Assembly: GCA_002269645.1 (NCBI GenBank)
Contig: NIVC01000304.1
Span: forward strand, 1 to 64,000
From: Macrostomum lignano
Taxonomy: Eukaryota
Direction of reading: 5' to 3'
DNA: 64,000 bases
Of this stretch, positions 4,863-60,325 are shown piece by piece; within the stretch, counting starts at the first letter, position 1, and every line of letters begins with the position of its first letter. Position numbers and translations under genes: made by a program. The notes beneath the pieces are model-generated. The model worked only from the letters and a program-made list of their open reading frames with translations. It had not been told where the DNA came from and made no database searches.

Positions 4863-10800
<5,938 letters not shown>

Positions 10801-15004: not shown

Positions 15005-16055
15005 ATGATATATTGCGGCGCAGATCCTGGCTCTTCGCCGAGTCATCGAGGAGGCGCGGATTCGCCAGTCGATCCTGATTCTAATCTTTATTGATTTCAA
15101 GAAGGCATTCGACTCGGTTGTCAGAGCCGTGCTTCCAATGGTGCTCCGCGCGTACAACGTGCCTAAGCAGCTGATCTCCGCCATCATGGCGATGTACCGT
15201 GATACGACAGCTGCTGTGACAACACCGGACGGCCTATCGGACTCCTTTGAGACATCCTCCGGAGTACGTTCCTATTCCGCCGTTCCTGTTCCGCCTGGTA
15301 CTTGACTGAGTGCTGCGGACTGCTCTTCCTACCGACGACGACGGTTTTCTGCTGCGGCGACGCGTGGGTCGACGTCAACCGGAGGAGCGGCTCAGCGTGC
15401 TTGGCTACGCCGACGACCTCGCCCTGCTGTCCTCGACCGTCGAGGGCGCCCAACGGCAGCTGGACAGGCTAGTTGCCGTTGCGGCGAGTGTCGGCCTGGT
15501 GGTCAACACGCAGAAGACCGTTGTGCTCTGCGTGCCGGACGACATCGAGGCTGCAATATTCTGCCGAGGCGCTGACGGGCAGGCGACCGAACTCCCGCGA
15601 TGTCAGCAGTTCGTCTACCTCGGCGGTCTGGTTCCAGACGCTCGCGAAGACCTGCGACGCCGCCGCGGGCTTGCCTGGGCTGCCTTTCGTTCTGTGAGGG
15701 CAGTCCTGCAGTCCGAGGCCCTACCGGACCGCCAGAGGGCGGCGCTGTTCCAGGCGGTAATCGAGACCGTCCTGCTGTACAACGTCGAGACCTGGACGCT
15801 GACGGACTCACTCGAACAGCAGGTCGATGCGGCGCACGCTGGCCTGCTGCGCGCCGCCTTCAACATCGGCGTCGAGCGAGTCAACAATAGTCGCCGCGCT
15901 GGCCTGCCACGTCCAAGTGATCTACTGCGCCGTCGGCGACTCCAGCTCGCAGGCCATCTCATCCGCGCCGAGTCGTACTGCCCACAGCCGGTGCAGGAGG
16001 TGCTGCTGCTCACGCTGCAGGCACCCTACCGGCGAGGTCAAGCGCGAACTCGGCG
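15005..16055 (+). pseudogene. RTE-clade LINE reverse transcriptase fragment, truncated and disrupted
   Basis: QILALRRVIEEARIRQ..IFIDFKKAFDSV..LRAYNVP (15020-15265); the QGD motif region is damaged, with an in-frame TGA at about 15306; then LGYADDLALLS, FVYLGG, VLLYNVETWTLT, RRRRLQLAGH. Confidence 0.92.
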
Positions 16056-16616
16056 TGCATGGAAAATTAGCCGACAATGCTTTCAAACGAGCCCCCAACT
16101 TTTTTCACCATGATTTGGCTTGTTTCGCGTCCCGGTAGTGTTAGTTGTCCCTGATTCCTACGTTTCAATTACTTTGAGAATCGTGTTGTCAACGCTCATT
16201 TTGGCGCCGCAGGCACTCATTTTGGCGCCGCAGGCACTCATTTTAGCGCCGCAGGCACTCATTTTAGCGCCGCAGGCACTCATTTTAGCGCCACAGGCAC
16301 TCATTTTAGCGCCGCAGGCACTCATTTTAGCGCCACAGGCACTCATTTTAGCGCCACAGGCACTCATTTTAGCGCCACAGGCACTCATTTTAGCGCCGCA
16401 GGCACTCATTTTGGCGCCGAAGGCGCCATATTTTCTTCGCGCTATTTTAAGGCGAAGAAAAATTATTGATTATCACAATTTGGGTCACAATTAGTGGGGT
16501 GGGGGGGGGACAAAGCATTGGCATGTCCCCCCATAGCTTTTACTATCAGGGGGACATATCCGGGGGTATGTCCCCCTGTCCGTCCGTCCCCCCCTCCTGG
16601 TGGCGACGCGCCATGC
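16056..16616. mobile_element. Probable non-autonomous DNA-transposon remnant carrying a 21-bp array
   Basis: Begins GCATGG, ends CCATGC; gcgccgaaggcgcc and G/C-run motifs typical of hAT-like non-autonomous elements; no TSD seen. Confidence 0.35.
16196..16420. repeat. 21-bp minisatellite, about 10 copies
   Basis: Unit ctcatttt(a/g)gcgcc(g/a)caggca. Confidence 0.95.
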
Positions 16617-29564: not shown

Positions 29565-31037
29565 TACATTAACAAATTGTCTATTTAGAGTATTATATAA
29601 CAATAGTAAATATGCTCTAATAGGCAAAACAAAAAGAAATAAAAGTTATAAACAAAAATGTTATAGAAAATTGGTGGCTTTCATTAAAAGCAAAATGTGT
29701 TTGGCATAAAACAAAATTATCACTAAATGACTATTTGCTGCCAAAATGACCAGATAACCTAAACCTAAAAAATGTTAGTGCATAAAATTTTAAGAAAATA
29801 GTATGTTTTCTTATTATTCTTACTCTTATACAAACAAGTTTGAAATTAGGTTATTTGAAATATAACCTATAGTCTAGATAACCTTTTTGCTTTTCATTGA
29901 GAATCATATTCTCTTAGTTAATATGTTCTATGTTTGTACAAATTTTGCTTAATAAGTTTGAAGAAAAAGACACTTCTAAATATGCTGTTACTTCAAAAAT
30001 TTATTTGCATATATCCCCACCTAGTGAGATTTCAACAATTTCAACAAATGCATCAGATAGACTGCTGCATTTTTCTATCTTATAAAACCATTTTGCAAAT
30101 TAGTCCCTCAATTCCATCTGCAAACTTATCAAGCAACCCTATAAGCAGTGTCAGACACATTATCAGATATATTTTAAATAAATATCATTTTTTCAAGAAT
30201 TTTTTTCATTTTTTCACAATAAAAGTTCTATTTTAAATCTATATAATGTTTTTTCTACCAATAAAGCTGATGACTCACATTGCTAGCATTAAATTTTATT
30301 GCAGACTTTGTCACAATCTATTTGATGCATGTTATTTTCACTTTTATCCCCACTTCTATTCACATACCAGTTTAAACATCTCCAGATTATATCTATGTAT
30401 ATTTGTATTTCTAACAAATTGAGAAAAAGAGTTTCTGCCTTCAAAAAGAAAAAATAATGTAAAAGCAACATGAAACAATTCAAAAGCACAAGAAATGCTT
30501 TATTGCCTCCATTTCTCTTAGGGTTTGTTTGTGAGCCTAGAGTAAAATAAATGTTAGCCATCCACTTCTCCTTGCGCTGTACTTTGTGCTGCCTTTGTGT
30601 GCCATCATCTCTACCCATTCTTGGGATGGGGGGTTTGCTCACCCACTTGTATTTAAATGACATTTGATACCATATAAATAAAGGATTAGAAAAAAATATT
30701 TTTGATAAAAAGGTGGACTGATATACACTAAATAATATATAGAAACTAAAAAATAGGTCTGGGTCTATTGATTTTCTATATTTATTCACTCTATCAACCA
30801 GGCATAAAGTATATTTGAATTAGTATGACATAAATCTTATTAAAATGTCAAGTCTATTATGCAACACTGCTACATTAGTAATTTTTGTTTCCATTTTATT
30901 TATACTTGATGATTTTTATTTAAATGAAGCTCAACATTTTACATATTTTCCTGCATGCCATAATATCAAATCAAATTAGTCAAAAAATCACTTAAAATTT
31001 TGTGTTGCTAAAACATGATGATTTTGTCTCCCAATTC

Positions 31038-32693
<1,656 letters not shown>

Positions 32694-39770: not shown

Positions 39771-41350
39771 ATGCCCAAATTTGGTCCAGCATACACGGAT
39801 ACATGATCTGCACACTGGGTTCCTCTTGATTGCAACTTAATTTTCACTTTGTATATGACTTTTCTTGCCTTTTTTTCTCTTTCTCTCTTTTCTTTCCTCT
39901 CTCTCTCTCTTCTCCTTCCTTTTTTCCTTTCTTTTCCTCTCTTCTTTCTTTTCCCAATTTTTCATATTTCATATTTTTGATTTTGTGACTTATCTTGGCC
40001 AATGGCCATTTCACGTTTTTTACCTGTCTGGTTTGGATAGGTCAGATAGATGTTGGGCATGTATGTATATGAAACTTGCATTTGCAAATCCTTTAACTAT
40101 GTTGATATAAATAAAGAAATCTTGAGGATTTTGTTTTTTAAGAAGTCATTGTAAAATATAAAACCAATATAAACTGAGTCTATTTTTCAATTTTCAACCA
40201 ATCTAAATTTACTAAATCTCTAAGATCTGTCTATTTGTCTGTTTGTAATGCTTTTTGTGTACTAAAAATAATTTTTTAAATTGACAAAATTATCTTTTTT
40301 TAGTTTATTATAGGTCAGTATTGTTGTCCCTAGTTAGGAAACAACTTTTAATATACTAAATCAAGTCTACTACATGATAGAAAGAAATTAAAGGCATTGG
40401 ATATATATACAGTGAAGAATAGCAAAACAATTTCTTTAGTTATCCCATGCATTTGAGACCTAAGGCTAACTTTTTAAGATATTATTGCAAATGTTTTGGC
40501 TATTCTATTTATATCAGATTTATTATTATTAATAGACAAGAGACAAGAGCTAAAAATGACATTAGGCATAAGAATTGGTCAATTGAAATTGTTTATATAA
40601 AAAGATTTATTGCAATAGTGCAACCAAAAATTTTTTAGGGGGGGGGGCAGATTCTGGTAGGTAAAGTCCCAGGAGGGGGACAGAGGTTTGGTTCTGTTTT
40701 TGGTGAAAATTCTCTTGGCCCCCATTTGATTTTTTGAGTCTCCACCTAAGGGGGGTGACTGCCCACCTCGCCCTCCCCCCCCCCCCCCCCCAGTTGCGCC
40801 ACTGATTTCTTAGGCCTAAAAACCTAAAAAAAATTAGGTAAAAATGATCAGTGTCTACTAATACACAATAATTGTCAAAGTATTATATACCCTATATAAT
40901 AAGGGTATATATACTCAAAACTTCAACAAGGCAAAAAGCCTAAAGTATTTCCCTCCCCCCATCTTATTTCTCCTGGGTGCCACTAGTATAAAGATGGCAT
41001 ACTTAGGGTAAGAATAAGAGTAAAATGTGTTGAAGCCATGCACTACAACAGAGATTTTTATTATTAGGCTTTATTCTAAATGATTGGTCATAAAATATAT
41101 TAGTTTTCTATTAAGATATTTGCTTTAAAAATTGAAGTATATCAATTATTTTTTACTTTAAACCCTATATATTTTTTATTGGGGAATTCAGAAATATACT
41201 ACTGCTTTATGTTTCTTTTATTATTTAATTTGAATCAAGCTCAACATTTTACATATTTTCCTGCATTCCATAGTATCAAATTAAATAAGTCAAAAAATCA
41301 CTTTAAAAAATTTTGTGTCGCTAAAACTTGATGATTTTGTCTCCCAATTC

Positions 41351-43012
<1,662 letters not shown>

Positions 43013-43978: not shown

Positions 43979-46900
43979 ATGGCTTCCTGCGCTCGCTGCT
44001 TTCGGCGTATGTACCGGGACCAGTTTGCCTACCAGCCGGTGACCCTGGCGCCGCCAGTGCAGCTGGATAATGCCACAATGGGCCAGGGTGTTGTCCTAGT
44101 TAAAAATGGCCGCCGTATCTGCGGTACGGGTGCCGCTAGGGCTAATTGCCCGGTGTCGCAGGTGAGCCAGAGAATTCGACTTAAATTAGAGCCCTCTCTA
44201 CTTGTGTTTGTTTGTGCGTTTGTGTATGCAATAACATACAGAGACAGGTGTGTCGCACACACATTACACGATAAACATTGAGCCCTTCAATCCGAGTATT
44301 TTATGTTTCTCATACAGGGTGGGGGGTGGGTCGAAAGTCTATTTTGCAATTTGCGTCCGCAGTTTTTTTGGCTACAAAAGCAAGTAAGAAACGATTTTTT
44401 ACAAGTAGCAAAGACTCACTTGTAGCAAGGCAGAGACTCGGCTCGATTAAAAAAATGATTTCGACATTCTATCCGGTTGGTTTCTAAGATGGTATGGTCG
44501 CCGAGCTAGTAAAGTTTAACAGTGCTGTTATATAATAACGGCATAAATTAGTCTGGAATCCATAGGCGTTAGGAAACGCACAATGAATTGCCAGGAATCC
44601 AGAGTGGTTAGGAAACGCACAATGAATTGCCTGGAATCCAAAGTCGTTGAGCAACGCACAATGAATTGCCTGGAATCCAAAGTCGTTGAGCAACGCACAC
44701 TGAATTGCCTGGAATCCAAAGTCGTTGAGCAACGCACAATGAATTGCCTGGAATCCAAAGTCGTTGAGCAACGCACAATAAATTGCCTGGAATCCAGAGG
44801 CGTTAGGAAGCGCACAATGACTTGCCTAGAATCCAGAGTCGTTAGGAAACGCAAAATGAATTGCCTAGAATCCAGAGCGGTTAGAAAACGCACAATGACT
44901 TGCCTGGAATCCAAAGTCGTTGAGAAACGCACAATGAATTGCCTGGAATTCAGAGGCGTTAGGAAACGCACAATGAATTGCTGGAATCCAGAGTGGTTAG
45001 GAAACGCACAATGAATTGCTGGAATCCAGAGCGGTTAGGAAACGCACAATGACTTGCCTGGAATCCAAAGTCGTTGAGAAACGCACAATGAATTGCTGGA
45101 ATCCAGAGGCGTTAGGAAACGCACAATGAATTGCGCGCCTGGAATCCAGAGGCGTTAGGAAACGCACAATGACTTGCCTAGAATCCAGAGTCGTTAGGAA
45201 ACGCAAAATGAATTGCCTAGAATCCAGAACGGTTAAGAAACGCACAATGACTTGCCTGGAATCCAAAATCGTTGAGAAACGCACAATGAATTGCCTGGAA
45301 TCCAGAGGCGTTAGGAAACGCACAATGAATTGCTGGAATCCAGAGTGGTTAGGAAACGCACAATGAATTGCTGGAATCCAGAGCGGTTAGGAACGCACAA
45401 TGACTTGCCTGGAATCCAAAGTCGTTGAGAAACGCACAATGAATTGCTGGAATCCAGAGGCGTTAGGAAACGCACAATGAATTGCCTGGAATCCAGAGGC
45501 GTTAGGAAACGCACAATGACTTGCCTAGAATCCAGAGTCGTTAGGAAACGCAAAATGAATTGTCTAGAATCCAGAGCGGTTAGGAAACGCACAATGACTT
45601 GCCTGGAATCCAAAGTCGTTGATAAACGCACAATGAATTGCCTGGAATCCAGAGGCGTTAGGAAACGCACAATGAATTGCTGGAATCCAGAGTGGTTAGG
45701 AAACGCACAATGAATTGCTGGAATCCAGAGCGGTTAGGAAACGCACAATGACTTGCCTGGAATCCAAAGTCGTTGAGAAACGCACAATGAATTGCTGGAA
45801 TCCAGAGGCGTTAGGAAACGCACAATGAATTGCCTGGAATCCAGAGGCGTTAGGAAACGCACAATGACTTGCCTAGAATCCAGAGTCGTTAGGAAACGCA
45901 AAATGAATTGTCTAGAATCCAGAGCGGTTAGGAAACGCACAATGACTTGCCTGGAATCCAAAGTCGTTGAGAAACGCACAATGAATTGCCTGGAATCCAG
46001 AGGCGTTAGGAAACGCACAATGAATTGCCTGGAATCCAGAGGCGTTAGGAAACGCACAATGAATTGCTGGAATCCAGAGCGGTTAGGAAACGCACAATGA
46101 CTTGCCTGGAATCCAAAGTCGTTGAGAAACGCACAATGAATTGCTGGAATCCAGAGTGGTTAGGAAACGCACAATGAATTGCTGGAATCCAGAGTGGTTA
46201 GGAAACGCACAATGAATTGCCTGGAATCCAGAGGCGTTAAGAAACGCACAATGAATTGCCTGGAATCCTGAGGCGTTAGGAAACGCACAATGAATTGCTG
46301 GAATCCAGAGTGGTTAGGAAACGCACAATGACTTGCCTGGAATCCAGAGTGGTTAGGAAACGCACAATGACTTGCCTGGAATCCAGAGTCGTTAGGACTT
46401 TAGGCGTTGGGACGCGCAGTGGATTTTCTATTGCTCGGTACAGATAAAAGTATGATAGCTAAGACTGATTGCGTAGCTGATACTGATACGCAATGACCTC
46501 GCTGATGGTAAGGAGTTACACGGAGTCTGAGTGCTTACTAGTCGTACGACACCGTAGTGCCCGCCCACGGTTGATATCGCTTGTCCATTCCTTGCAGCAG
46601 AAAACAACACTCAAAATGTAAAAAATCGAATAGGTAATCTTGGCGGAAAATTGGTCGAAATCTTGAGTGAAATTCCAGAGCAGACCGCGATCCCGGCAGA
46701 CTGCTACTTCACAGTTTGTCTTAGTGTGAATACCCCTACACGAAATCCAACCCCACAGGACAAGGCCTATTGGGAGGTGAAGCTGCAGTCCTGCGGCAGC
46801 TGGGGCATCGGCCTCGGCACTGTTCGCTGCGACCTTGAGTCGCCTAACAATCTCGGCTCCGACGCCGAGTCGTGGGCCCTGCGCGACGATGCAGCTATTT

Positions 46901-47204: not shown

Positions 47205-48065
47205 CTGCCGCCCTCCCAGATCCTTAGGCTGAGCAGCCAGCTTCCAAGATCCTCAAGCTGAGCAGCCAGCCTCCCAGATCCTCAGGCTGAGCAGCCAGCC
47301 TCCCAGATCCTCAGGCTGAGCTACACTCCCAGATCCTCAGGCTGAGCCTCCCAGATCCTCAGGCTAAGCCTCCCAGATCCTCAGCTGAGCAGCCAGCCTC
47401 CCAGATCCTCAGGCTGAGCAGCCAGTCTCCCAGATATTCAGGCTAAGCATCCCAGATCCTCAGGCTGAGCCTCCCAGATCCTCAGCTGAGCATTCAGCCT
47501 CCCAGATCCTCGGGCTGAGCCTCCCAGATCCTCAGTTGAGAAGTCAGCCTCCCAGATCCTCAGCTTGGCAGCTACACTCCCAGATCCTCTGGCTGAACCT
47601 CCCAGATCCTCAGCTGAGCAGCCAGCCTCCCAGATCCTCAGCTGGGCAGCTACACTCCCAGATCCTCGGGCTGAGCCTCGCAGATCCTCAAACTGAGCAG
47701 CCAGCCTCCCAGATCCTCAGCTGGGCAGCTACACTCCCAGATCCTCGGGCTGAGCCTCGCAGATCCTCAGGCTGAGCAGCCAGCCTTCCAGATCCTCAGG
47801 CTGAGCAGCCAGTCTCCCAGATCTTCAGGCTAAGCATCCCAGATCCTCAGGCTGAGCTACACTCCCAGCTACACTCCTCGATCCTCAGGCTGAGCCTCCC
47901 AGATCCTCAGCTGAGCAGCCAGCCTCCCAGATCCTCAGCTGGGCAGCTACACTCTCAGATCCTCGGGCTGAGCCTCCCAGATCCTCAGGCTAAGCCTCCC
48001 AGATCCTCAGCTGAGCAGCCAGCCTCCCAGATCCTCAGCTGGGCAGCTACACTCCCAGATCCTCA
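47205..48065. repeat. Compound tandem array (units about 21-29 bp) just 3' of the SPRYD7 stop
   Basis: (gcctcccagatcctcaggctgagcagcca)n with ctacactcccag variants. Confidence 0.93.
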
Positions 48066-48661: not shown

Positions 48662-49185
48662 ATCTAACGGGTTTTTGTCGCAAAAGCGCCTTATAGTTCC
48701 TAAAGTTCGGTATATGCTTTTGAGCACAGTTGCCGCATTATATTGTTATTTGTTACGATCAATATTGCCGAAGAATCTTGAATGTCAAACAGGACATGTG
48801 TTTTTATAGTTTCTATCCTTATATTTTAATTTTAGTGGTTGCACTCGCATGCGTTAATGTGTGTTTTGTTTTAAACGATCTTGTCATCCACGCAGACTAC
48901 TATAGATGCTCGATCATTATATTAAGCGTTAACTTTGAGTAAATTTTAATATACTTGGCGTAAATATATTATAATGCCGTGTTGTTTACATTGATTTATA
49001 AGTGTGAAAATTAAGATGAAACATTGCCTGGCCTCTTTCACTGCTTTGATTCTTTCTCATTCGAAAATATAAACATAGCATCTGCTGACTGGCTATGGGA
49101 TTAGTGGCATCCGCTGACTGGCTATGGGATTAGTGGCATCCGCTGACTGGCATAAGCAGTGTAGCTCACTAATAGCAGTGAGCTA

Positions 49186-49887
49186 CCTTAGTGCATTCAA
49201 AAAGTTCTTAGACACCCCTCATATCTCTGCATCTACGGGAGAAAATCTAAGCAGACGGGAGCTACTGCAACGGCGTCGGATCGTGCGCAAGGGCGTCTTG
49301 CTGCACTGCGACAATGCCCGGCCGCACTCGGCAGCCCTCACTCGCTCTTACATCGACAGCCTCAGATTCCAGCAGTGGCAGCATCCGCCCTATTCGCCTG
49401 ATTTGGCACCGTCTGACTATGGCCTTTTTGGACACGTCAAGGCGCAGCTGAGAGGCAAGAGGTTCGCTAGCTTCCCCGAGCTGCAAACGGCTGTTGAGGG
49501 GCTCATCAGAGCGACTCCTAGAGACACGTGGTTAGGATGGATCGAAGAGCTGCCGATGCGGTATGACAAGTGCATTCAACGGAACGGTGATTACTTCGAA
49601 GATTTTCATGATTGGTGATCTGATTTTTGAAGTTTGGGAACTTGCCAACTTGAACCGTTTGCCCTTTAGCTTGTACGTTTTGTTATGTGCTTAAAATCGT
49701 ATTGCTAATTTCGTAGGTTCGTCAGTAAATGATCGATTGCTTTCGTTCTGTCTATATACGACCAAGCTGAAACTCTAGCACTGAATTCATCAAATATAGA
49801 CCCATGTTTGTATAACTTCTCATCAAAATCGGTCGAACAGATGCAGAGATATGAGGGGTGTCTAAGAAATTTTTGAATGCACTAAGG
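49186..49887 (+). mobile_element. Internally deleted mariner retaining the 3' third of the transposase
   Basis: TA-flanked 49-bp TIRs (49186-49234 and 49839-49887, one mismatch); LLHCDNARPH...HPPYSPDLAPSDYGLF with 34 residues between the two Asp, ..KCIQRNGDYFE. Confidence 0.92.
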
Positions 49888-50665
49888 TATTTCGCATATT
49901 TAATAAGCCAGACAAATTTGATTGTAATAATTTGATCTACAAGCATGACTGCTGTTGGTTGGCATCTTCAGTAGACAGGTTCAGTATGAGTGCAGTAAAA
50001 TCGCATTGCAATTGTTTGTATTTGACATGCCATCTGGCAGTTAAGACAAATTTTTGAACAAATTTAGCATGTTTTCAATTTAATTTTCTAAGCCAGTGTT
50101 TTCCTGCTTGCGCGCTTAAGCAAGATATATTACCGGTATTTTTATTATTCGGTGTCCTTGAAACAAATCTACTTTCAAAAAGCTCGTCACGTGAGCAGTC
50201 CACAGCGGAGCTACTGGACTTGTGAAAACATGCTGGCAGTTGATAAATGTGTAATAATAATCCGTAGCAACCATCTCCAATACAAACAGATCGCTCTATA
50301 TGAGAGCGCAGTACATTTCAGTTACCTTCGTCCAGAAGTAGTGAAAAAGTCCGTGCTGCCTGTAAATACTTGTGCATACCACTGAGCTCAACGGAGTTTT
50401 ATCTAAGTCTGGAAAGAGACCAAGGCACACGGATCCAATCTTATCAATTTTTACTGTGCGAGAGGCCGCCCGCCAGTCGCAGTAATAAAAATCCAAGCTA
50501 AAAATGCTCAAAGGCCAAGAATTCGGCAAATCTTCGCCCTTTTCGGTTTGGGCGTTGCCGCCAGCTCTCCAAGCGATCGAGACTCTCAGAGCCCGCAGCT
50601 GAAGTCACTGCCGCCAGCTCCAAGCGATCGAGAATCTCAGAGCCCGCAGCTGAAGTCGCTATTCG

Positions 50666-53600
50666 ATGTACCGAGCCGCCATTGCTACGCTCGCCGTCGT
50701 CGCCCTGACGTTGACGGCGGCCCGAGGGCAGCCGCAGCCGGTCGGAGAGGCCAATGTGACCATCGGAAGCTGCTCGATCGTCGGCTCCGAGTTCAATCTG
50801 ACGATGCCCGACGGTCTCGGCAGCCGCCTGCTCCGCTTCCTGCGGGTGCCGTACGCCGAGCCGCCAATCGGCGACAGGCGGCTCGCCAAGCCGCAGCCGT
50901 TCAACTTCAGCCGCTCCGACTGCCGGCTGACCGGCGAGGAGGCCGCTGACCCCGAGGAGAACTTGCTCCGCCTCAGCATTCGAACTCCCGACCTTGCCCC
51001 CGCTGATCCGCTGCCCGTCCTGGCGCTGCTGCTCGACGGCTCCTCCGACTTCAATGACAGCCTCGGTCACGAAGTCGGCGACGCTATCGGCACAAATGTC
51101 GTCATGGCAACCATCGGCAGTCGATTCGGCGTCCTTGGCAACGTGCCGGCAGGGCAGAACAACGGCCTTGAGGATCAGCGCCTGGCGCTGGAGTTCCTGC
51201 GCGACCAGCTGCACCGATTCGGCGGCGACCCGGCGCGAGTGACGCTGGCCGGCCACGGCGCCGCCGCTGCCGCTGTCGGCCTGCACGCGGTTGGAAGCGG
51301 CGGATTCTCGCGCGTCGTCATGATGAGCGGCTCCATCGCCGCGCCGCTGGGCTGGTCGGCCTCCGCCGAAGTGGCCGCCGCCCTGGACCGCCAGCTGGCC
51401 GCCAGCCTGAGCTGCGGCATCGGAGATGAAGGCCGCCTGCCGCTCGACTGCCTGCGGAGCAAGCCGCTGAAGGACCTGCTGGATGCTGAGTCGCTTCTCC
51501 GGCGGGACTACGGCGACGGCGCTGGTCGGTTCGCGCCGTCCTTCAACGTCTCCTTGCTGCCGGACGCGCTCTGGCGCTCTGGCGCCTTCAACGGCTCCCT
51601 GATGGTCGGCGTCGGAACTGGCGTCGGCCCGGCGCTGGCGGAGCTGGCGCTTCGCGTGCAGGGCGCCGACTGGGGCGCGCTCGACCAGACGGCATTTGAG
51701 ACCGTGAGTGGCGCGCTGCTCTGAGCTGGGGCTGAGCTGAGCTCCCTGATCCCTTCATGCAGTGCCGTTCCAGCCATGCAGCTGCCTGACCCACCTGGCC
51801 ACTGCAGCTGCCACTCACCTGACCAACCTGGCCACTGCAGCTGCCACTCACCTGACCAACCTGGCCACTGCAGCTGTCACTCACCTGACCCACCTGGCCC
51901 CTTTGCAGCTGCCACTCACCTGATCCACCTGGCCACTGCAGCTGCCACTCGCCTGACCCACCTGGCCACTGCAGCTGCCACTCACCTGACCCACCTGGCC
52001 ACTGCAGCTGTCGCTCACCTGACCCACCTGGCCACTTTGCAGCTGTCACTCACCTGACCCACCTGGCCACTTTGCAGCTGTCACTCACCTGACCCACCTG
52101 GCCACTTTGCAGCTGTCACTCACCTGACCCACCTGGCCACTTTGCAGCTGTCACCCACCTGACCTACCTGGCCACTTTGCAGATCCTGGACCGCGAGTTC
52201 GGCCAGTTTCCCCGCCTCCACTCGGCCGGCCGAAACGCCTCGGTCAGCGGGCGCCGCTACCTCCGACTGACTCTGTCCGACTGGCCGCACTTCGCCTACG
52301 GCGGCCGCGTCCGCCACATTTTGGCCCGCGCGCTGTCCGACTTTGGCGCCGTCTGTCCGGTTTGGGAGGCCGCCAACGACCTGATTGGCTCAGGCCGGGT
52401 GTTCGTCTACCTGCACGATGAGGACGGCGATCCCGCAGCTGCACTGTCGGTGGCGAATGATGCGAAGGTGCTGCTGGGAGAGCCGCTGGTGCGAGCGAAC
52501 TACTCAGCTGAGCACAGGAGCCTGTCCAGAATCATGATGCAGCACCTGGTCGATTTTACTGCTAGTGGAGGTGAGTTCTTAAGGCAGCTGTGTAATTGAA
52601 ATGCCTGGTCAGAGTTTCTGCTTCAAATGCCTGCTCAGAGTTGCTGCTTCAAATTCCTGCTCAGTGCTCAGAGTTGCTGCTTCAAATGCCTGCTCAGAGT
52701 TGCTGCTTCAAATGCCTGCTCAGAGTTGCTGCTTCAAATGCCTGCTCAGAGTTGCTGCTTCAAATGCCTGCTCAGAGTTGCTGCTACAAGAGCCGCTTTC
52801 ATTTCTTCTTTAAGCTCCCAGTCCCGGCTGGCCCTCCAGCAGCGCCGGCGCCTTTGATTTCCTGCGCTTCGGCGCCAAAACCGGCGTCAATTCGACAAGC
52901 GGCGGCTTCGCCTTCGAGCCCGGCCGCTGTCCACTCTGGTCGGCCGAGATGTCGCTGGCCAGCAACCTGTCCGCCTCGCCGCCTCCTCCGCAGCCGCCGC
53001 TGCCGCCTCCGCCACCGCGAATCTCGCCAGGAGGTGCGCAGCCGTTCTCGAACACGGTGCTGCGGAACTACACCGTGAATATTCTTGGGCTGGGTCTGAC
53101 GTTCGGCCAGACGATCCGCACCCCCGCTGGCAAAGTGATGACGCAGTTTCTCGGCCTGCCCTACGCCAAGCCTCCCATCGAAGGGAAGCGCTTTGCTGTT
53201 CCGGAGCCGGCGGATCCGTTCGGTGAGCTGCCGCTACCAGCCTCGAGTCCTGCATTGAGTCCCGCATTGAGTCCCACATTGAGTCCCGTATTGAGTCCCG
53301 CATTGAGTCCCGTATTGAGTCCCGCATTGAGTCCCACATTGAGTCCCACATTGAGTCCCACATTGAGTCCTGCCCTAGCAACTAAGCGTTGATCCACGAC
53401 CGACTTCCTTTTACCCTGCAGGCGAGGACTTCCTAGCGATAAGCCCGAAGCCCGCATGTCCGCAGCCGGGGCCACTCGCGACCTCCGAGGACTGCCTCTA
53501 CCTGAACTTGTGGACACCGCGCACTCGGACCGGGAAGTCAAAAACCTCCCCGTCTTGGTGTTCCTTCACGGCGGCTTCTTTCAGACTGGCGACGCCTTCG

Positions 53601-56600
53601 ATGAGCGCTGGCGGGGCAGCCACGTGCTGGACCAGGTGGATGCGGTGGTGGTGACGGTCGCCTACAGACTGGGTGAGTGGGTGAGGAGAGGGTGAGGAGA
53701 AGGTGAGGAGAGGGTGAGGAGAGGGTGAGGAGAGGGTGAGGAGAGGGTGAGGAGAGGTTGAGGAGTGGGTCAGGAGAGGGTGAAGAGAGGGTGAGGAGAG
53801 GATGAGGAGTGGATGAGGAGAGGGTGAGGAGAGGGTGAGGAGAGTGTGAAGAGAGACTGAGGAGATGGTAAGTGAGGAGAGGGTTCTCAGGCCTTTGGTG
53901 AGCTGCGGCAGCAATGGCAGGTGATGGGATCTGAGGTGCTCAGGCCTTTGGTGAGCTGCGGCAGCAATGGCAGGTGATGGGATCTGAGGTGCTCAGGCCT
54001 TTGGTGAGCTGCAGCAGCAATGGCAGGTGATGGGATCTGAGGTGCTCAGGCCTTTGGTGAGCTGCAGCAGCAATGGCAGGTGATGGGATCTGAGGTGCTC
54101 AGGCCTTTGGTGAGCTGCAGCAGCAATGGCAGGTGATGGGATCTGAGGTGCTCAGGCCTTTGGTGAGCTGCAGCAGCAATGGCAGGTGATGGGATCTGAG
54201 TTGCTCCGGGCTGCAGTAGCAAAGGGGATCTTCCAGCTTCAGTCGCAATGCTTGCTGATTCCCAGGTGCTCTGGGCTTCCTGTGGCTGCAAAACGCCTCG
54301 GTGCCCGCAAACCTTGGCCTCCGAGACCAGGCGCTGGCCCTCCAGTGGGTGCGCTACAACGTGCGCTTTTTTGGCGGCAGCCCCAGCAAAATCAGCCTGG
54401 TGGGCGTGGAGGCCGGCGCTGCCTCCGTCGGCTTCCACCTGCTGGTGGAGCCGCGGCAGTTCCAGCGCGCCGTCCTTCTGTCGGGCTCGCCGAACTCCCC
54501 CTTCGCGGTGTCGCCAATGCCAGACGAAGTGCGGGCAATGCACGAAAATTTTACAGGTGAGACACCTGCAGATGCCCGTTTGCTTGCAGTTTAGGAGTAC
54601 TTTGAGTACTGTGCTTGTGCTCAGCACAGTCCGCGCAAGTATTATCTGCCAGACTGCACAGGTGTCAGCTCATCCTCCCCTCCGACTCCTCAGCCAGCTA
54701 CCTGAACTGCAGCCAGTCGACCCCCGCTGAGCTGCTGGACTGCCTGCGCAACCTCACCTCCTCGGAAATCGTCAGCGCGGCCGCAGACTTCCAGCGCGAC
54801 GTCGCCGGCCTCCAGGCGCCCTTCGTCGCCTTCGGACCCGCCCTGGACGCCGACTTCCTGAAGTCCGACCCGTGGTCGGTGGACGCCTTGCCGCCGGTTC
54901 CGCTGCTGCTGGGCGGCGTGGACTCCCCCGGCAACACGCTGGTGCGGCTGCTGCTGCCCGATGGCCTGAACGTGACGCGGGACCGCGTGCTGGAGGTGAG
55001 GTGCACAGCACCTGGGCCAGTCACTGCTGAGTCCCGCACTCCTCTCACCTCCTACAGCACCTGGGCCAGTCACTGCTGAGTCCCGCATTCCTCTCACCAC
55101 CCACAGCACCTGGCCCAGTCACTGCTGAGTCCCGCACTCCTCTCACCTCCCACAGCACCTGGGCCAGTCACTGCTGAGTCCCGCACTCCTCTCACCTCCC
55201 ACAGCACCTGGGCCAGTCACTGCTGAGTCCCGCACTCCTCTCACCTCCCACAGCACCTGGCCCAGTCACTGCTGAGTCCCGCACTCCTCTCACCTCCCAC
55301 AGCACCTGGGCCAGTCACTGCTGAGTCCCGCACTCCTCTCACCACCCACAGCACCTGGCCCAGTCACTGCTGAGTCCTGCACTCCTCTCACCTCCCACAG
55401 CACCTGGGCCAGTCACTCCTCTCACCTCCCACAGCACCTGGGCCAGTCACTCCTCTCACCTCCCACAGCACCTGGGCCAGTCACTCCTCTCACCTCCCAA
55501 AGCACCTGGGCCACTCGCTCCTCTCACCACCCACAGCACCTGGGCCACTCGCTCCTCTCACCTCCCACAGCACCTGGGCCAGTCACTCCTCTCGCCACCC
55601 ACAGCACCTGGGCCACTCGCTCCTCTCACCTCCCACAGCACCTGGGCCACTCGCTCCTCTCACCACCCACAGCACCTGGGCCACTCGCTCCTCTCACCTC
55701 CCACAGCACCTGGCCCAGTCACTCCTCTCACCACCCACAGCACCTGGGCCAGTCACTCCTCTCACCTCCCAAAGCACCTGGGCCACTCGCTCCTCTCACC
55801 ACCCACAGCACCTGGGCCACTCGCTCCTCTCACCTCCCACAGCACCTGGGCCAGTCACTCCTCTCACCACCCACAGCACCTGGGCCACTCGCTCCTCTCA
55901 CCTCCCACAGCACCTGGGCCACTCGCTCCTCTCACCACCCACAGCACCTGGGCCACTCGCTCCTCTCACCACCCACAGCACCTGGGCCACTCGCTCCTCT
56001 CACCTCCCACAGCACCTGGGCCAGTCACTCCTCTCACCTCCCACAGCACCTGGGCCAGTCACTCCTCTCACCACCCACAGCACCTGGGCCAGTCACTCCT
56101 CTCACCTCCCACAGCACCTGGCCCAGTCACTCCTCTCACCTCCCACAGCACCTGGGCCAGTCACTCCTCTCACCACCCACAGCACCTGGGCCACTCGCTC
56201 CTCTCACCTCCCACAGCACCTGGCCCAGTCACTGCTGAGTCCCGCACTCCTCTCACCTCCCACAGCACCTGGGCCAGTCACTGCTGAGTCCCGCACTCCT
56301 CTCACCACCCACAGCACCTGGCCCAGTCACTGCTGAGTCCTGCACTCCTCTCACCTCCCACAGCACCTGGGCCAGTCACTCCTCTCACCTCCCACAGCAC
56401 CTGGGCCACTCGCTCCTCTCACCACCCACAGCACCTGGGCCACTCGCTCCTCTCACCTCCCACAGCACCTGGGCCAGTCACTCCTCTCACCACCCACAGC
56501 ACCTGGGCCACTCGCTCCTCTCACCTCCCACAGCACCTGGGCCACTCGCTTCTCTCACCTCCCACAGCACCTGGGCCAGTCACTCCTCTCGCCACCCACA

Positions 56601-59399
56601 GCACCTGGGCCACTCGCTCCTCTCACCACCCACAGCACCTGGGCCACTCGCTCCTCTCACCTCCCACAGCACCTGGCCCAGTCACTCCTCTCACCACCCA
56701 CAGCACCTGGGCCAGTCACTCCTCTCACCACCCACAGCACCTGGGCCACTCGCTCCTCTCACCTCCCACAGCACCTGGGCCAGTCACTCCTCTCACCTTC
56801 CACAGCACCTGGGCCAGTCACTCCTCTCACCTCCCACTGCACCTGGGCCAGTCACTCCTCTCACCACCCACAGCACCTGGGCCAGTCACTCCTCTCACCT
56901 CCCACAGCACCTGGGCCAGTCACTGCGCCACTTCCCCCGCTTCGGCGAGTCGCTGTCCTCGGTCGGACTGGAGGCCGCGAGTCGCCGCTTCGCCGAATTC
57001 CCCAGCTCGACCGCTGACGCCGGCGTCGGGGACGTCAAGGAGGCCCAGCTGCTATCGCGGGCGCTGGGCGATCGGCACTTTACCTGCCCTAGCTGGAGCT
57101 TCATGGCCAAAGCGGCTGCTTTGAGCACTGCTCAGGTTTTCGGCTTCCTGCTCGCCGAGCCGGCCGAGGAAATCGGGGATCGGCTGGTCGGCGCCAGCCT
57201 CTGTGAGCAGGCGGGGCTGAGGGGAGCGGGGAAGCCAGGCAGGTGGGATGAGCTCGCTCAGGTTAGCACTGAGGCACTGGTTATCCAGTGCAAATCGCCT
57301 CTCACTGACGTGCTCCAAAGCCCCTCCAACCGCTTAGCTCCCACTCACTGAAGTGCTCCAAAGCTCCTCCAACCGCTTAACTCCCACTCACTGACGTGCT
57401 CCAAATCCCTCCAACCGCTTAGCTCCCACTCACTGAAGTGCTCCAAAGCCCTCCAACCGCTTAACTCCCTCTCACTGAAGTGCTCCAAAGCCCTGCCAAC
57501 CACTTAACTCCCTCTCACTGAAGTGCTCCAAAGCCCCGCCAACCGCTTAACTCCCACTCACTGAAGTGCTCCAAAGCCCCGCCAACCGCTTAACTCCCAC
57601 TCACTGAAGTGCTCCAAAGCCCCGCCAACCGCTTAACTCCCTCTCACTGAAGTGCTCCAAAGCCCTGCCAACCACTTAACTCCCTCTCACTGAAGTGCTC
57701 CAAAGCCCCGCCAACCGCTTAACTCCCACTCACTGAAGTGCTCCAAAGCCCCGCCAACCGCTTAACTCCCTCTCACTGAAGTGCTCCAAATCCCTCCAAC
57801 CGCTTAGCTCCCACTCACTGAAGTGCTCCAAAGCCCTTCAACCGCTTAACTCCCTCTCACTGAAGTGCTCCAAAGCCCTGCCAACCACTTAACTCCCTCT
57901 CACTGAAGTGCTCCAAAGCCCCGCCAACCGCTTAACTCCCACTCACTGAAGTGCTCCAAAGCCCTGCCAACCGCTTAACTCCCACTCACTGAAGTGCTCC
58001 AAAGCCCTCCAACCGCTTAACTCCCTCTCACTGAAGTGCTCCAAAGCCCTGCCAACCACTTAACTCCCTCTCACTGAAGTGCTCCAAAGCCCCGCCAACC
58101 GCTTAACTCCCACTCACTGAAGTGCTCCAAAGCCCCGCCAACCGCTTAACTCCCTCTCACTGAAGTGCTCCAAACCCCCCTCCCAACTGCTTAACTCCCT
58201 CTCACTGAAGTGCTCCAAAGCCCCGCCAACCGCTTAACTCCCACTCACTGAAGTGCTCCAAAGCCCCGCCAACCGCTTAACTCCCTCTCACTGAAGTGCT
58301 CCAAATCCCGCCAACCTCTTAGCTCCCACTCACTGAAGTGCTCCAAAGCCCCGCCAACCGCTTAACTCCCACTCCAGCGGATGACGCCGTCTACGCCTTG
58401 GGCAGCCCTGCGAGACCCTCCAAGCCGCTTGGCGAGGCGCGCGCCCAACTGTCGGGCTTCCTCGTCCGCAGCCTCGTCGAGTTCGCCAACAGCGGCAACG
58501 TGAGCTGGGAGGCCTACGGGGCCGACAGCCGGCGGGTGCTGCTGCTGCGCGACTCTGGAAGCGGCGGCTGGAACGTCAGCTGGCCGCCTCGCTACGTTGA
58601 GCACGCGCTCCGCGGACTGGACTGCGCCTTCTGGGACCAGACGCTGCCGTGCGTCGCCTCGCCTGACTGCATCAACGACCTCCCTACGCCCTCGCCGACG
58701 ACACCGACAGAGGCACCGACGGAGACACCAACGGCACCACAGACGGAGACACCAACTATGGCACCGACGCAGATGACGGAGACACCCAGTATGGCACCGA
58801 CGAAGATGACGGAGACGCCCACGAAGGCACCGACGGAGACGCCCACGAAGGCACCGACGGAGACGCCTGAGACATCGACTACTTGGACAGAGGCATCGAC
58901 CCAGACACCGAAGCCAACTTCCACTTGGACAGCGACGGAATTCACAAGAGAAACACAGGTGACTGATGAATCTACAATCGCTACCGATTCCATCACTGAT
59001 CCATCCAGGCCTACCAGTCCACGGGCAACCAGTGGCATAACTGGGACAACCGATCCAAGACCAACAGACCCGAGATGGTCCGCTAGTACAGAAGCACCCA
59101 CAGAAACCACGGGGCTCGCCACTGACCAAACAGCAACTAAGAATCCCACCGCTGCCACCATGTCAACAACCGCACTCACCTCTCCGATCCTCCCATCCAA
59201 GACTACGCCGGTGGCGACGCCCGAACCGGATACAGGCCTTGAAACTTGGGTCATTGCGCTGCTGGTTGTGGGCTCCATCCTCGGCGCTGTACTGCTCGTC
59301 GGAGCTGGCTTCTTGCTCTACAAGTTCAGCTTGAGGACAAACTCGGTGCACAGCGTAGAGATGCAGGGCACTGGACAGTGGCGACAGCGCCATGAATAG
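50666..59399 (+). CDS. Type-I membrane protein, about 1,331 aa: signal peptide, cholinesterase-like domain 1, Pro linker, cholinesterase-like domain 2, Thr/Pro stalk, TM helix, short tail. Exons 50666-51703, 52183-52570, 52815-53222, 53422-53672 (1-nt frameshift near 53540), 54266-54556, 54694-54995, 56908(or 56920)-57202, 58378-59399
   Basis: Two sets of type-B carboxylesterase motifs. Domain 1: FLRVPYAEPPIGDRRL, GLEDQRLALEFLRDQLHRFGGDPARVTL, CPLW. Domain 2: FLGLPYAKPP, SEDCLYLNLWTP, LPVLVFLHGG, YRLGALGFL, NLGLRDQALALQWV..FGGSP, LGDRHFTCP, CAFW. TM segment WVIALLVVGSILGAVLLVGAGFLLY; phases join to 3996 nt after a +1 correction. Confidence 0.88.
51775..52182. repeat. 33-35-bp minisatellite, about 12 copies, intron 1 of the esterase-like gene
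   Basis: Unit ctgacccacctggccact(tt)gcagctg(c/t)cactcac; the last unit supplies the acceptor. Confidence 0.95.
52605..52790. repeat. 26-bp tandem repeat, about 7 copies, intron 2
   Basis: Unit cctgctcagagttgctgcttcaaatg. Confidence 0.93.
53245..53372. repeat. 12-bp tandem repeat, about 10 copies, intron 3
   Basis: Unit ttgagtccc(g/a)(c/t)a. Confidence 0.93.
53673..54200. repeat. Two arrays in intron 4: 13-bp (gagggtgaggaga)n, then a 53-bp unit in about 6 copies
   Basis: 53-bp unit ctcaggcctttggtgagctgcagcagcaatggcaggtgatgggatctgaggtg. Confidence 0.93.
55004..56925. repeat. 34-bp (and about 49-bp variant) minisatellite, about 50 copies, intron 6
   Basis: Unit cctctcacctcccacagcacctgggccagtcact, overlapping the start of exon 7. 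Confidence 0.97.
57300..58372. repeat. About 43-bp minisatellite, about 25 copies, intron 7
   Basis: Unit tcactgaagtgctccaaagccccgccaaccgcttaactcccac. Confidence 0.97.
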
Positions 59400-59784
59400 A
59401 CTTGGCCAGTACCGCATTACAATTTGTTATCGAACTGCTTTAGTTTAACTTTTACTGCTGCAGTTCTTGTGGAAAACGACGCTTTTGTATCTATAAGACT
59501 GACCTTCCATGCAATTGAATCTTAGTTGAGCTGACACGGATTTTATATTTTAATCGAATCGTTTCAACTTGATTTTTTCACGCGCAGTCTTGATTTTATA
59601 AAGCTTTATAATTTTACAAGGATGAACAAAACAATTGAATTTAAAATATAAAAACTACTATCTGACGTTCCTTTTTGCTAGCAATTCTTTCATACAAACG
59701 GAAAAGAACGTTTTTTATCCTTCTTATAATCTATCAAGATTGACCATCCAAAGACTGCAATATATTTTTGTATGCTCCCCACCA

Positions 59785-60325
59785 GAAACAAGTGCAGTCT
59801 ATGGCATATCACACCGGAAACAAGTGCAGTCTATGGCATATCACACCGGAAACAAGTGCAGTCTATGGCATATCACACCGGAAACCAAGTGCAGTCTATG
59901 GCATATCACACCGGAAACCAAGTGCAGTCTATGGCATATCACACCGGAAACCAAGTGCAGTCTATGGCATATCACACCGGAAACAAGTGCAGTCTATGGC
60001 ATATCACACCGGAAACAAGTGCAGTCTATGGCATATCACACCGGAAACCAAGTGCAGTCTATGGCATATCACACCGGAAACCAAGTGCAGTCTATGGCAT
60101 ATCACACCGGAAACCAAGTGCAGTCTATGGCATATCACACCGGAAACAAGTGCAGTCTATGGCATATCACACCGGAAACAAGTGCAGTCTATGGCATATC
60201 ACACCGGAAACAAGTGCAGTCTATGGCATATCACACCGGAAACAAGTGCAGTCTATGGCATATCACACCGGAAACCAAGTGCAGTCTATGGCATATCACA
60301 CCGGAAACAAGTGCAGTCTATGGCC
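59785..60325. repeat. 32/33-bp minisatellite, about 16 copies
   Basis: Unit ggaaac(c)aagtgcagtctatggcatatcacacc. Confidence 0.97.

Follow-up and report, generated by a model that had tools for sequence, protein, structure and literature searches.

We analysed a 64,000-nucleotide stretch of the Macrostomum lignano genome (contig NIVC01000304.1, positions 1 to 64,000 of the forward strand; hereafter the window), in which a plus-strand gene at 50666-59399 is predicted to specify a surface protein with two tandem cholinesterase-like domains, D1 and D2. The locus belongs to an M. lignano gene family of at least four copies, the annotated members of which are BOX15_Mlig025559g1 and BOX15_Mlig025559g3 (hereafter g1 and g3). 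The best explanation of the data, which we hold with moderate confidence, is that the locus is a Mlig025559-family copy and represents a tandem variant of the cholinesterase-like adhesion molecules in which both domains are catalytically dead. The g1 and g3 proteins (1234 and 1232 amino acids, respectively; both named 'Carboxylesterase type B domain-containing protein' in UniProt, from GenBank assembly Mlig_3_7) are 97-98% identical to the window protein over both domains, and share with it the exon structure, the dead triads, the poly-Pro linker, and the transmembrane (TM) helix.

The domain assignments and the loss of the catalytic residues carry this interpretation. A Pfam COesterase (PF00135) scan, proposed as a check by a previous sequence-only reading of the window, matched two domains. 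D1 scored 153 bits (E 1.8e-44; amino acids 54-485, profile positions 24-487 of 515) and D2 scored 299 bits (E 8.9e-89; profile positions 10-501), both above the gathering cut-off of 27 bits. Catalytic positions were read from alignments to BChE and AChE and to a domain hidden Markov model (HMM) built from 46 single-domain relatives. At the nucleophile position D1 has Gly (GHGAA) and D2 has Glu (GVEAG); the acid position is occupied by Val in D1 and by Pro in D2; and at the His position D2 has Leu and D1 has either Asn or Val, two alignments differing on this point. By these alignments the whole triad (Ser, acid, and His) is absent from both D1 and D2, and the protein therefore cannot be a serine esterase. 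The sequence-only reading had already pointed to the two nucleophile elbows without Ser and to the two His regions without His (SVANDA in D1 and SLSDDA in D2); both observations hold, and the acid is lost besides. Three disulfide pairs are canonical for cholinesterases, of which D2 keeps all three and D1 keeps two. The ectodomain as a whole contains 14 Cys and 18 N-glycosylation sequons.

The two domains also differ in how they vary. D1 is more degenerate than D2 relative to the family profile (153 versus 299 bits), yet it is more strongly constrained between gene copies, the copy-to-copy ratio of non-synonymous to synonymous substitution rates (dN/dS) being 0.21-0.28 for D1 (50666-53222) and 0.57-0.78 for D2 (53018-58640). 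The D2-type nucleophile position (Glu744 in the window protein, 54409-54411) is always acidic in the M. lignano paralogues P0001, P0002, P0006, and P0007, in the forms GVEAG, GAEAG, and GDDAG, even though the paralogues concerned are only 33-40% identical. Substitution of Ser by Asp or Glu at this position recurs in unrelated COesterase matches (GLDAG, GQDAG, and GSDTG), some of which retain the Glu and His.

The remaining features of the protein are those of a surface molecule. A predicted signal peptide, MYRAAIATLAVVALTLTAARG, is encoded at 50666-50728 and was recognised as a hydrophobic N-terminus. The poly-Pro linker PPPPQPPLPPPPP (52979-53017) lies between the domains, and a stalk that begins at 58683 in the last exon comprises, if unspliced, 188 amino acids of which 32% are Thr and 16% Pro. 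Hydrophobicity analysis revealed one C-terminal hydrophobic helix only, the TM helix at 59247-59321, which is followed by the tail KFSLRTNSVHSVEMQGTGQWRQRHE (59322-59396). Signal peptide, linker, stalk, and TM helix are thus each present where the sequence-only reading had placed them. That reading was also right that the tail ends RHE and is not of PDZ type; the tail is 25 amino acids long. The C-terminal residue is Glu, and the tail has no PDZ ligand or recognisable motif.

From these features we infer a type-I membrane glycoprotein, in which a signal peptide, two cholinesterase-fold domains joined by a flexible Pro linker, a stalk, a TM helix, and a short cytoplasmic tail would follow one another. 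The stalk would probably be O-glycosylated and hold the modules away from the membrane. Cholinesterase-like adhesion molecules use the non-catalytic cholinesterase fold as a binding surface (PMC5943944), and the ectodomain may likewise serve as a non-enzymatic binding surface. Because the 25-amino acid tail carries no recognisable motif, adhesion or capture appears a better assignment than signalling, and the window copy may act mainly as an adhesion molecule or as a molecule that presents or captures a ligand, rather than as a signalling receptor. The g1 and g3 proteins, with a Gln/Pro-rich tail of 85 amino acids, may by comparison couple to cytoplasmic partners.

Comparison with characterised proteins suggests that the window protein works like a cholinesterase-like adhesion molecule but is not a neuroligin. 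Neuroligins, gliotactin, neurotactin, and glutactin have, like the window protein, a non-catalytic cholinesterase-fold ectodomain, but they have one such domain where the window protein has two. Neuroligin and gliotactin resemble it further in crossing the membrane once with type-I topology, and the neuroligins have a glycosylated stalk (PMC5943944). The tails of the group are longer, and those of neuroligin and gliotactin end in PDZ ligands, whereas the window tail ends in RHE and the g1 and g3 tails in YTG. The window protein shows the structural feature of the class, a cholinesterase-like ectodomain that is non-catalytic and sits on a membrane-anchored or matrix protein, in that both triads are dead, the N-terminus forms a hydrophobic leader, and only one TM helix occurs, at the C-terminus. 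AChE and BChE resemble it in fold, in about 29-30% identity to D2, and in the three disulfides of D2, but differ in that the window protein lacks Ser, His, and acid in either domain and is anchored by its own TM helix. The top 60 matches of D2 in the PDB were all cholinesterases. For D1, neuroligin-2 ranked about 58th in the PDB, with an E value of 7e-25 compared to 4e-32 for BChE. The sole neuroligin-like sequence in our domain tree (Pollicipes, of low quality) did not group with the window protein. We rejected the possibility that the gene is a neuroligin orthologue, given its two domains, the lack of a PDZ ligand, and the closer match to cholinesterases in the PDB ranking.

The ectodomain could alternatively function mainly in soluble or shed form as a ligand trap, either scavenging choline esters or other small ligands or acting as a decoy. 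The retention of an acidic residue at the D2-type nucleophile position across such diverged paralogues hints at a retained pocket function and would suit a trap, and the very short tail leaves little scope for signalling. The TM helix, however, is conserved in both the window copy and g1/g3, and we consider a primarily soluble role improbable.

The exon model was built by three-frame translation and inspection of splice sites, together with tblastn of g1 and g3 onto the window. The coding region runs on the plus strand from an ATG at 50666 to a TAG stop at 59397-59399, in eight exons and probably nine, and all seven introns of the eight-exon model are bounded by GT..AG. The gene is GC-rich (about 61-64%), most of the remaining window being 30-55% GC. 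Exon 1 (50666-51703) encodes the first two thirds of D1, including the elbow GHGAA at 51251-51265 and TGVGP, which covers the acid position, at 51617-51631. Exon 2 (52183-52570) continues D1 with the His region SVANDA at 52447-52464. Exon 3 (52815-53222) encodes, in one unbroken frame, the C-terminal helix of D1, the poly-Pro linker, and the N-terminus of D2. The rest of D2 is encoded by exon 4 (53422-53672; EDCLYLN to HGGFF, with a change of frame inside), exon 5 (54266-54556; elbow GVEAG, with Glu for Ser, at 54403-54417), exon 6 (54694-54995; DSPGN, with Pro at the acid position, at 54921-54935), exon 7 (56908-57202), and the beginning of exon 8 (58378-59399), which also encodes the stalk, TM helix, and tail. 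The D2 His region SLSDDA is split by intron 7 and so spans 57196-58388. For exon 7 the acceptor that yields a start at 56908 is the one used in the annotated paralogues and adds the residues HLGQ; an alternative AG at 56919 gives a start at 56920 instead.

The last exon probably contains a further intron of 243 nt within the stalk, at 58959-59201 (CAG|GTGACT ... CCAAG|AC), the removal of which keeps the frame. The transcript-based g1 model splices out the homologous in-frame stretch of stalk (CAG|GTGACTGG…TTCCGAG|AC), and the window has a donor identical to that of g1 along with a usable acceptor. UniProt entry A0A1I8GYJ1, a 124-amino acid model that is 96% identical to the window C-terminus, splices out 58959-59201. 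If this intron is spliced, the stalk may be 107 amino acids long instead of 188.

Since gene predictors often fuse tandem COesterase genes, and some of the database matches (P0023 and P0011 among them) are plainly products of fusion that contain internal signal peptides or TM segments, the two-domain model could in principle be an artefact in which two neighbouring single-domain genes were wrongly joined. The gene structure speaks strongly against this. The junction between D1 and D2 lies inside exon 3 within a continuous open reading frame (ORF), no separate start or signal peptide precedes D2, and neither a stop nor a hydrophobic segment occurs between the domains. The GenBank annotation of g1 and g3 derives from a genome-guided transcriptome (StringTie/TACO/TBONE on RNA-seq; PMC5730564), and these transcript-based models agree with one gene, supporting a single mRNA that spans D1 and D2. 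We therefore rejected the two-gene model, which we regard as very improbable, and the single gene of the sequence-only reading stands.

We searched exhaustively for relatives with HMMER, taking the two-domain ectodomain as query, and sorted the hits by the domain HMM, a hydrophobicity scan, and the names given in the source. A word-index protein search gave only 5-7 matches whether the query was the full protein or its two-domain part, and the multi-domain relatives described here all come from the exhaustive search. The sequence-only reading did not recognise the architecture and had named many known double-domain homologues as a finding that would count against its interpretation. That finding is largely borne out: predicted proteins that carry 2-4 full COesterase domains number in the dozens among the hits, many of them top-ranked, and the architecture is already deposited, uncharacterised, in g1, g3, and several UniProt entries. 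Going by these sequence matches, the tandem-domain architecture is already in the databases and so is not new in that sense. Literature searches on proteins with tandem or double cholinesterase or carboxylesterase domains found nothing relevant.

Outside M. lignano a similar layout is seen in proteins of ambulacrarians and a nemertean, where two complete COesterase domains are followed by a C-terminal TM helix and a short tail, within about 1140-1350 amino acids in all; an N-terminal hydrophobic segment was detected in those of Lytechinus and Glandiceps. In Lytechinus pictus (XP_054767789), L. variegatus (XP_041477957), and three Diadema proteins (among them XP_071500051), both domains lack Ser, the Lytechinus proteins being 1191 amino acids long with the elbows GQGEG and GMGSG. 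Both domains of the Lineus protein (XP_064622620) also lack Ser. In Acanthaster (two genes, XP_022079595 and XP_022100211), Saccoglossus (XP_006825066), and Glandiceps (XP_077983973) the proximal domain is dead and the distal domain looks active, still having Ser, acid, and His unlike D1 of the window protein. The membrane-proximal domain is thus always non-catalytic in this set, and in the sea urchins and Lineus neither domain has Ser. Protein length and domain state are kept from one species to another and internal leaders are lacking, which argues for genuine genes and against models joined by the predictor. They differ from the window protein in being only 22-25% identical to it and in having short stalks without a long mucin-like region. 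A Styela protein has four domains and a TM helix.

We also examined the relationships among the individual domains with a bootstrapped neighbour-joining tree (61 domains, 482 aligned columns). All M. lignano domains fell into one clade with 96/100 bootstrap support, this clade taking in D1 and D2 of the window protein, the domains of older paralogues, and esterase-like proteins of M. lignano that have a single domain. The echinoderm D2s grouped elsewhere in the tree at 99/100, and the hemichordate D1s and the hemichordate D2s each paired at 100/100, likewise elsewhere. An orthology with the ambulacrarian double proteins, in which D1 would group with D1 and D2 with D2, was therefore not borne out in this tree. 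Intron 1 in D1 (FET|ILDREF) and intron 6 in D2 (VLE|(HLGQ)SLRHF) occupy corresponding positions in the alignment and share phase 0, which together with the single M. lignano clade points to a genomic tandem duplication within the flatworm lineage. With the D1s and D2s of the ambulacrarian and nemertean proteins in groups of their own, these proteins would be convergent analogues rather than orthologues, and the flatworm domain duplication looks, from the tree, independent. The lineage-specific origin put forward by the sequence-only reading is in agreement with this result.

The sequence-only reading suggested that the two domains of the chain may form an intra-chain pseudo-dimer; packing through an alpha3(7,8)/alpha10 four-helix bundle, this would replace the inter-chain dimer of cholinesterases and neuroligins. 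Cholinesterases, neuroligins, and thyroglobulin dimerise through such a bundle (PMC5943944). We modelled residues 24-1096 of g1, which are 98% identical to the window protein, with AlphaFold2 on an alignment of 39 two-domain sequences. Both halves of the ectodomain fold, with a mean predicted local distance difference test score (pLDDT) of 78.4 and 816 of 1073 residues at 70 or above. Foldseek aligned one domain-sized half of the model (about 555-565 columns) to human AChE and BChE with a target TM-score of 0.83-0.86; its output gave no indication of which half this was, and D1 and D2 separately gave near-full-length sequence alignments to solved cholinesterases. The predicted TM-score (pTM) of the model was 0.59, which may be somewhat higher than two wholly unplaced halves would give. 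At about 30 residues the linker could in principle span the distance that a pseudo-dimer requires, and the two-domain layout seems to have arisen more than once. The linker, however, is predicted to be disordered (pLDDT below 50 for residues 500-533), and this together with the low pTM gives the pseudo-dimer no positive support. Proteins with three and four tandem domains also exist (Styela, Lineus, and Solemya), so that an arrangement like beads on a string fits at least as well as a closed pair. We consider the pseudo-dimer unlikely.

The relationship of the window copy to g1 and g3 is close over most of the gene and breaks down at its 3' end. By blastn a block at 50423-58753 on the plus strand is shared with the g1 and g3 loci (NIVC01001827 and NIVC01000640) at 94-99% identity over 8.3 kb, the exons being 96-99% and the introns about 94-95% identical, and homology falls sharply outside this block. 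Past 58753, the TM region is about 69% identical to g1/g3 in DNA and about 55% in protein. The drop from about 98% to about 69% identity occurs within the last exon (58753-59399 compared with L001 17018-17490), and the window tail stops at a TAG where g1 runs on for about 60 codons. The g1/g3 tail of about 85 amino acids (…GGYTG) has no counterpart in the window, where the tail is 25 amino acids and ends in RHE, and the stalk of g1/g3 is about 40 amino acids as compared to 107-188 in the window copy. The loci also differ in their neighbours, g1 and g3 having an upstream PHD/zf-CXXC gene that is absent from the window and the window having a DDE transposase fragment instead. In a fourth copy, A0A1I8GXE… (P0004), residues typical of the window copy and of g1/g3 are combined in a mosaic. 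The abrupt loss of identity at the 3' end and the mosaic P0004 suggest, at the level of sequence comparison, that gene conversion or recombination between older paralogues shaped the 3' end, by which the window copy would have come to depart from g1/g3 in its longer stalk, diverged TM helix, and truncated tail.

Older paralogues have the same layout. A0A1I8I8B3 (P0007) is 43% identical to the window protein in one stretch across both domains, and A0A1I8G704 (P0006) has alternating D1-type (GHG..) and D2-type (GVEAG/GDDAG) domains. In both, the D1-type domain precedes the D2-type domain as in the window protein, but the sequences are much more diverged, and some of their D1-type domains retain the His that the window D1 lacks. 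The 3380 amino acids and 7-8 domain pieces of P0006 probably reflect several two-domain genes in tandem that the predictor ran together. That the layout is common to such diverged M. lignano paralogues indicates that the two-domain unit is much older than the recent genome duplication.

The sequence-only reading had treated the spliced product as full length. The architecture is as described, but the frameshift, which bears on the pseudogene outcome that this reading had named as evidence against itself, and the probable stalk intron had been missed: the literal splice is 3983 nt (2 modulo 3), is out of frame, and gives the full-length product only with one added base. Within exon 4, EDCLYLNLWTP is read in one frame and AHSDREVKNLPVLVFLHGG in another. 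The change of frame arises because one C is absent from a CCC run. DNA alignment with two paralogous loci places the missing base between 53518 and 53519, the window reading GGACA-CCGCGCAC where the paralogous loci read GGACACCCATGCAC or GGACACCCAAGCAC, and the site at 53517-53519 thus has CC rather than CCC. As assembled, translation ends about 50 codons past the frameshift (…MRWW, then a stop). In g1 and g3 the exon-4 frame is intact, and P0004 reads WTPAHSDREVKNL at this site, in frame. We ruled out a correction of the frame in an A5 run at 53540, as the paralogue DNA puts the missing C at 53517-53519, and also a mini-intron that would rescue the frame, as the sole GT..AG candidate is 28 nt and has the wrong length modulo 3.

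Two readings of the deletion are at hand: it was introduced during assembly or polishing, or it is a disabling mutation that very recently struck one of the redundant copies in a neopolyploid genome. If it is real, the window copy would be a young unprocessed pseudogene; its product would be a secreted fragment consisting of D1 and part of D2, its mRNA would probably be lost to nonsense-mediated decay, and the function would be carried by the intact copies g1, g3, and A0A1I8GXE…. We put this only slightly short of an even chance. A real loss would be expected among the 3-4 redundant copies in neopolyploid M. lignano, a systematic homopolymer error would be surprising in so short a run as CC/CCC, and the window locus lies in a different genomic context beside the transposase fragment. 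On the other hand, both public assemblies were made from the same PacBio reads and have known ORF-breaking errors, and multi-copy genes polish poorly. The exon-4 deletion is the sole defect in about 4 kb of coding sequence, which has no other stop or frameshift and in which every splice site is intact, and P0004, the copy that shares the window's Ala codon, reads WTPAHSDREV in frame. Pairwise dN/dS was 0.41-0.45 for all three pairs among window, g1, and g3, and copy-specific codon changes (synonymous to non-synonymous) numbered 15:14 in the window copy, 10:11 in g1, and 16:19 in g3. By these measures the window copy shows no relaxed constraint relative to the intact copies, its own ratio being equal to theirs.

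Several points weigh against our preferred interpretation of the locus as a family copy encoding a tandem dead-domain adhesion molecule. The frame is broken as assembled, and the full-length protein is not encoded by the window sequence itself. A0A1I8F5T… (P0005), a model of a window-type locus built on the older ML2 assembly, shows a change of frame at this very site, which favours either a real deletion or an error shared at the level of the reads. Protein database searches returned no protein, annotated or otherwise, from the exact window locus. The tree was built by a distance method (neighbour joining), and part of the support for the species clade could come from the GC-rich composition of M. 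lignano. An adhesion or binding role is inferred only by analogy with the known cholinesterase-like molecules. Literature searches found no expression, localisation, or binding data for any member of the family, and Mlig025559 was not found in the literature searched.

Minisatellites fill six of the seven introns, each with a unit of its own: 33 bp at 51704-52182, 26 bp at 52571-52814, 12 bp at 53223-53421, 11 and 53 bp at 53673-54265, 34/49 bp at 54996-56907, and 43 bp at 57203-58377. Intron 1 consists almost entirely of its 33-bp array and matches intron 6 of D2 in position and phase (0). Repeat scans gave about 45 copies of the 34/49-bp unit in the 1.9-kb intron 6 and 25 copies of the 43-bp unit in intron 7. 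The length of the intron 6 array varies by copy, being 1912 nt in the window, 807 nt in g1, and 341 nt in g3. Several of the units bear motifs that resemble splice sites. A (GGTGAGGAGAG)n array begins right at the exon-4 donor, and in introns 1 and 6 the units terminate in ..GCAG / ..CACAG, so that the last copy provides the true acceptor.

Other repeats and gene fragments surround the gene in the window. A 51-bp direct repeat (two copies, 94% identical) occurs at 50556-50657, right before the start codon and inside the block shared with the paralogues. The DDE_3 transposase fragment lies at 49124-49618, about 1 kb upstream of the gene and just outside the shared block, and a reverse-transcriptase fragment lies at 15310-16113. 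Minisatellite arrays outside the gene are found at 59780-60324 (a 32-bp unit present 17 times, just downstream of the 3' untranslated region), 44543-46397 (an array of about 1.9 kb), 47212-48064, and 7729-8654. Two copies of a large ORF, 98.8% identical and about 10.3 kb apart, are located at 30912-32671 and 41220-42984; these encode a ZMIZ1/2-like protein with a GBD-like domain and a MIZ/SP-RING zinc finger and represent a local segmental duplication.

Neuroligins, gliotactin, neurotactin, and the ChEL domain of thyroglobulin exemplify the reuse of an enzyme fold for adhesion and dimerisation, and to our knowledge the non-catalytic cholinesterase-like proteins described so far all carry one such domain per chain. 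A broader proposal, which we advance as speculative and rather doubtful, is that there exists a recurrent, hitherto undescribed class of animal surface protein with tandem, fully non-catalytic cholinesterase-like ectodomains, which would have arisen independently in flatworms and in ambulacrarians and nemerteans, with the second domain replacing a partner subunit through an intra-chain four-helix bundle and the conserved acidic residue at the nucleophile site of the membrane-proximal domain marking a retained ligand pocket. The locus is also an example of mosaicism between gene copies, and of introns filled by minisatellites, in a neopolyploid genome. Two dead domains in a single chain raise the question of dimerisation, and a conserved family of this kind, present in a genetically tractable flatworm and seemingly arisen independently in sea urchins, sea stars, hemichordates, and a nemertean, could be used to test whether dimer geometry is what selection on the fold has preserved.

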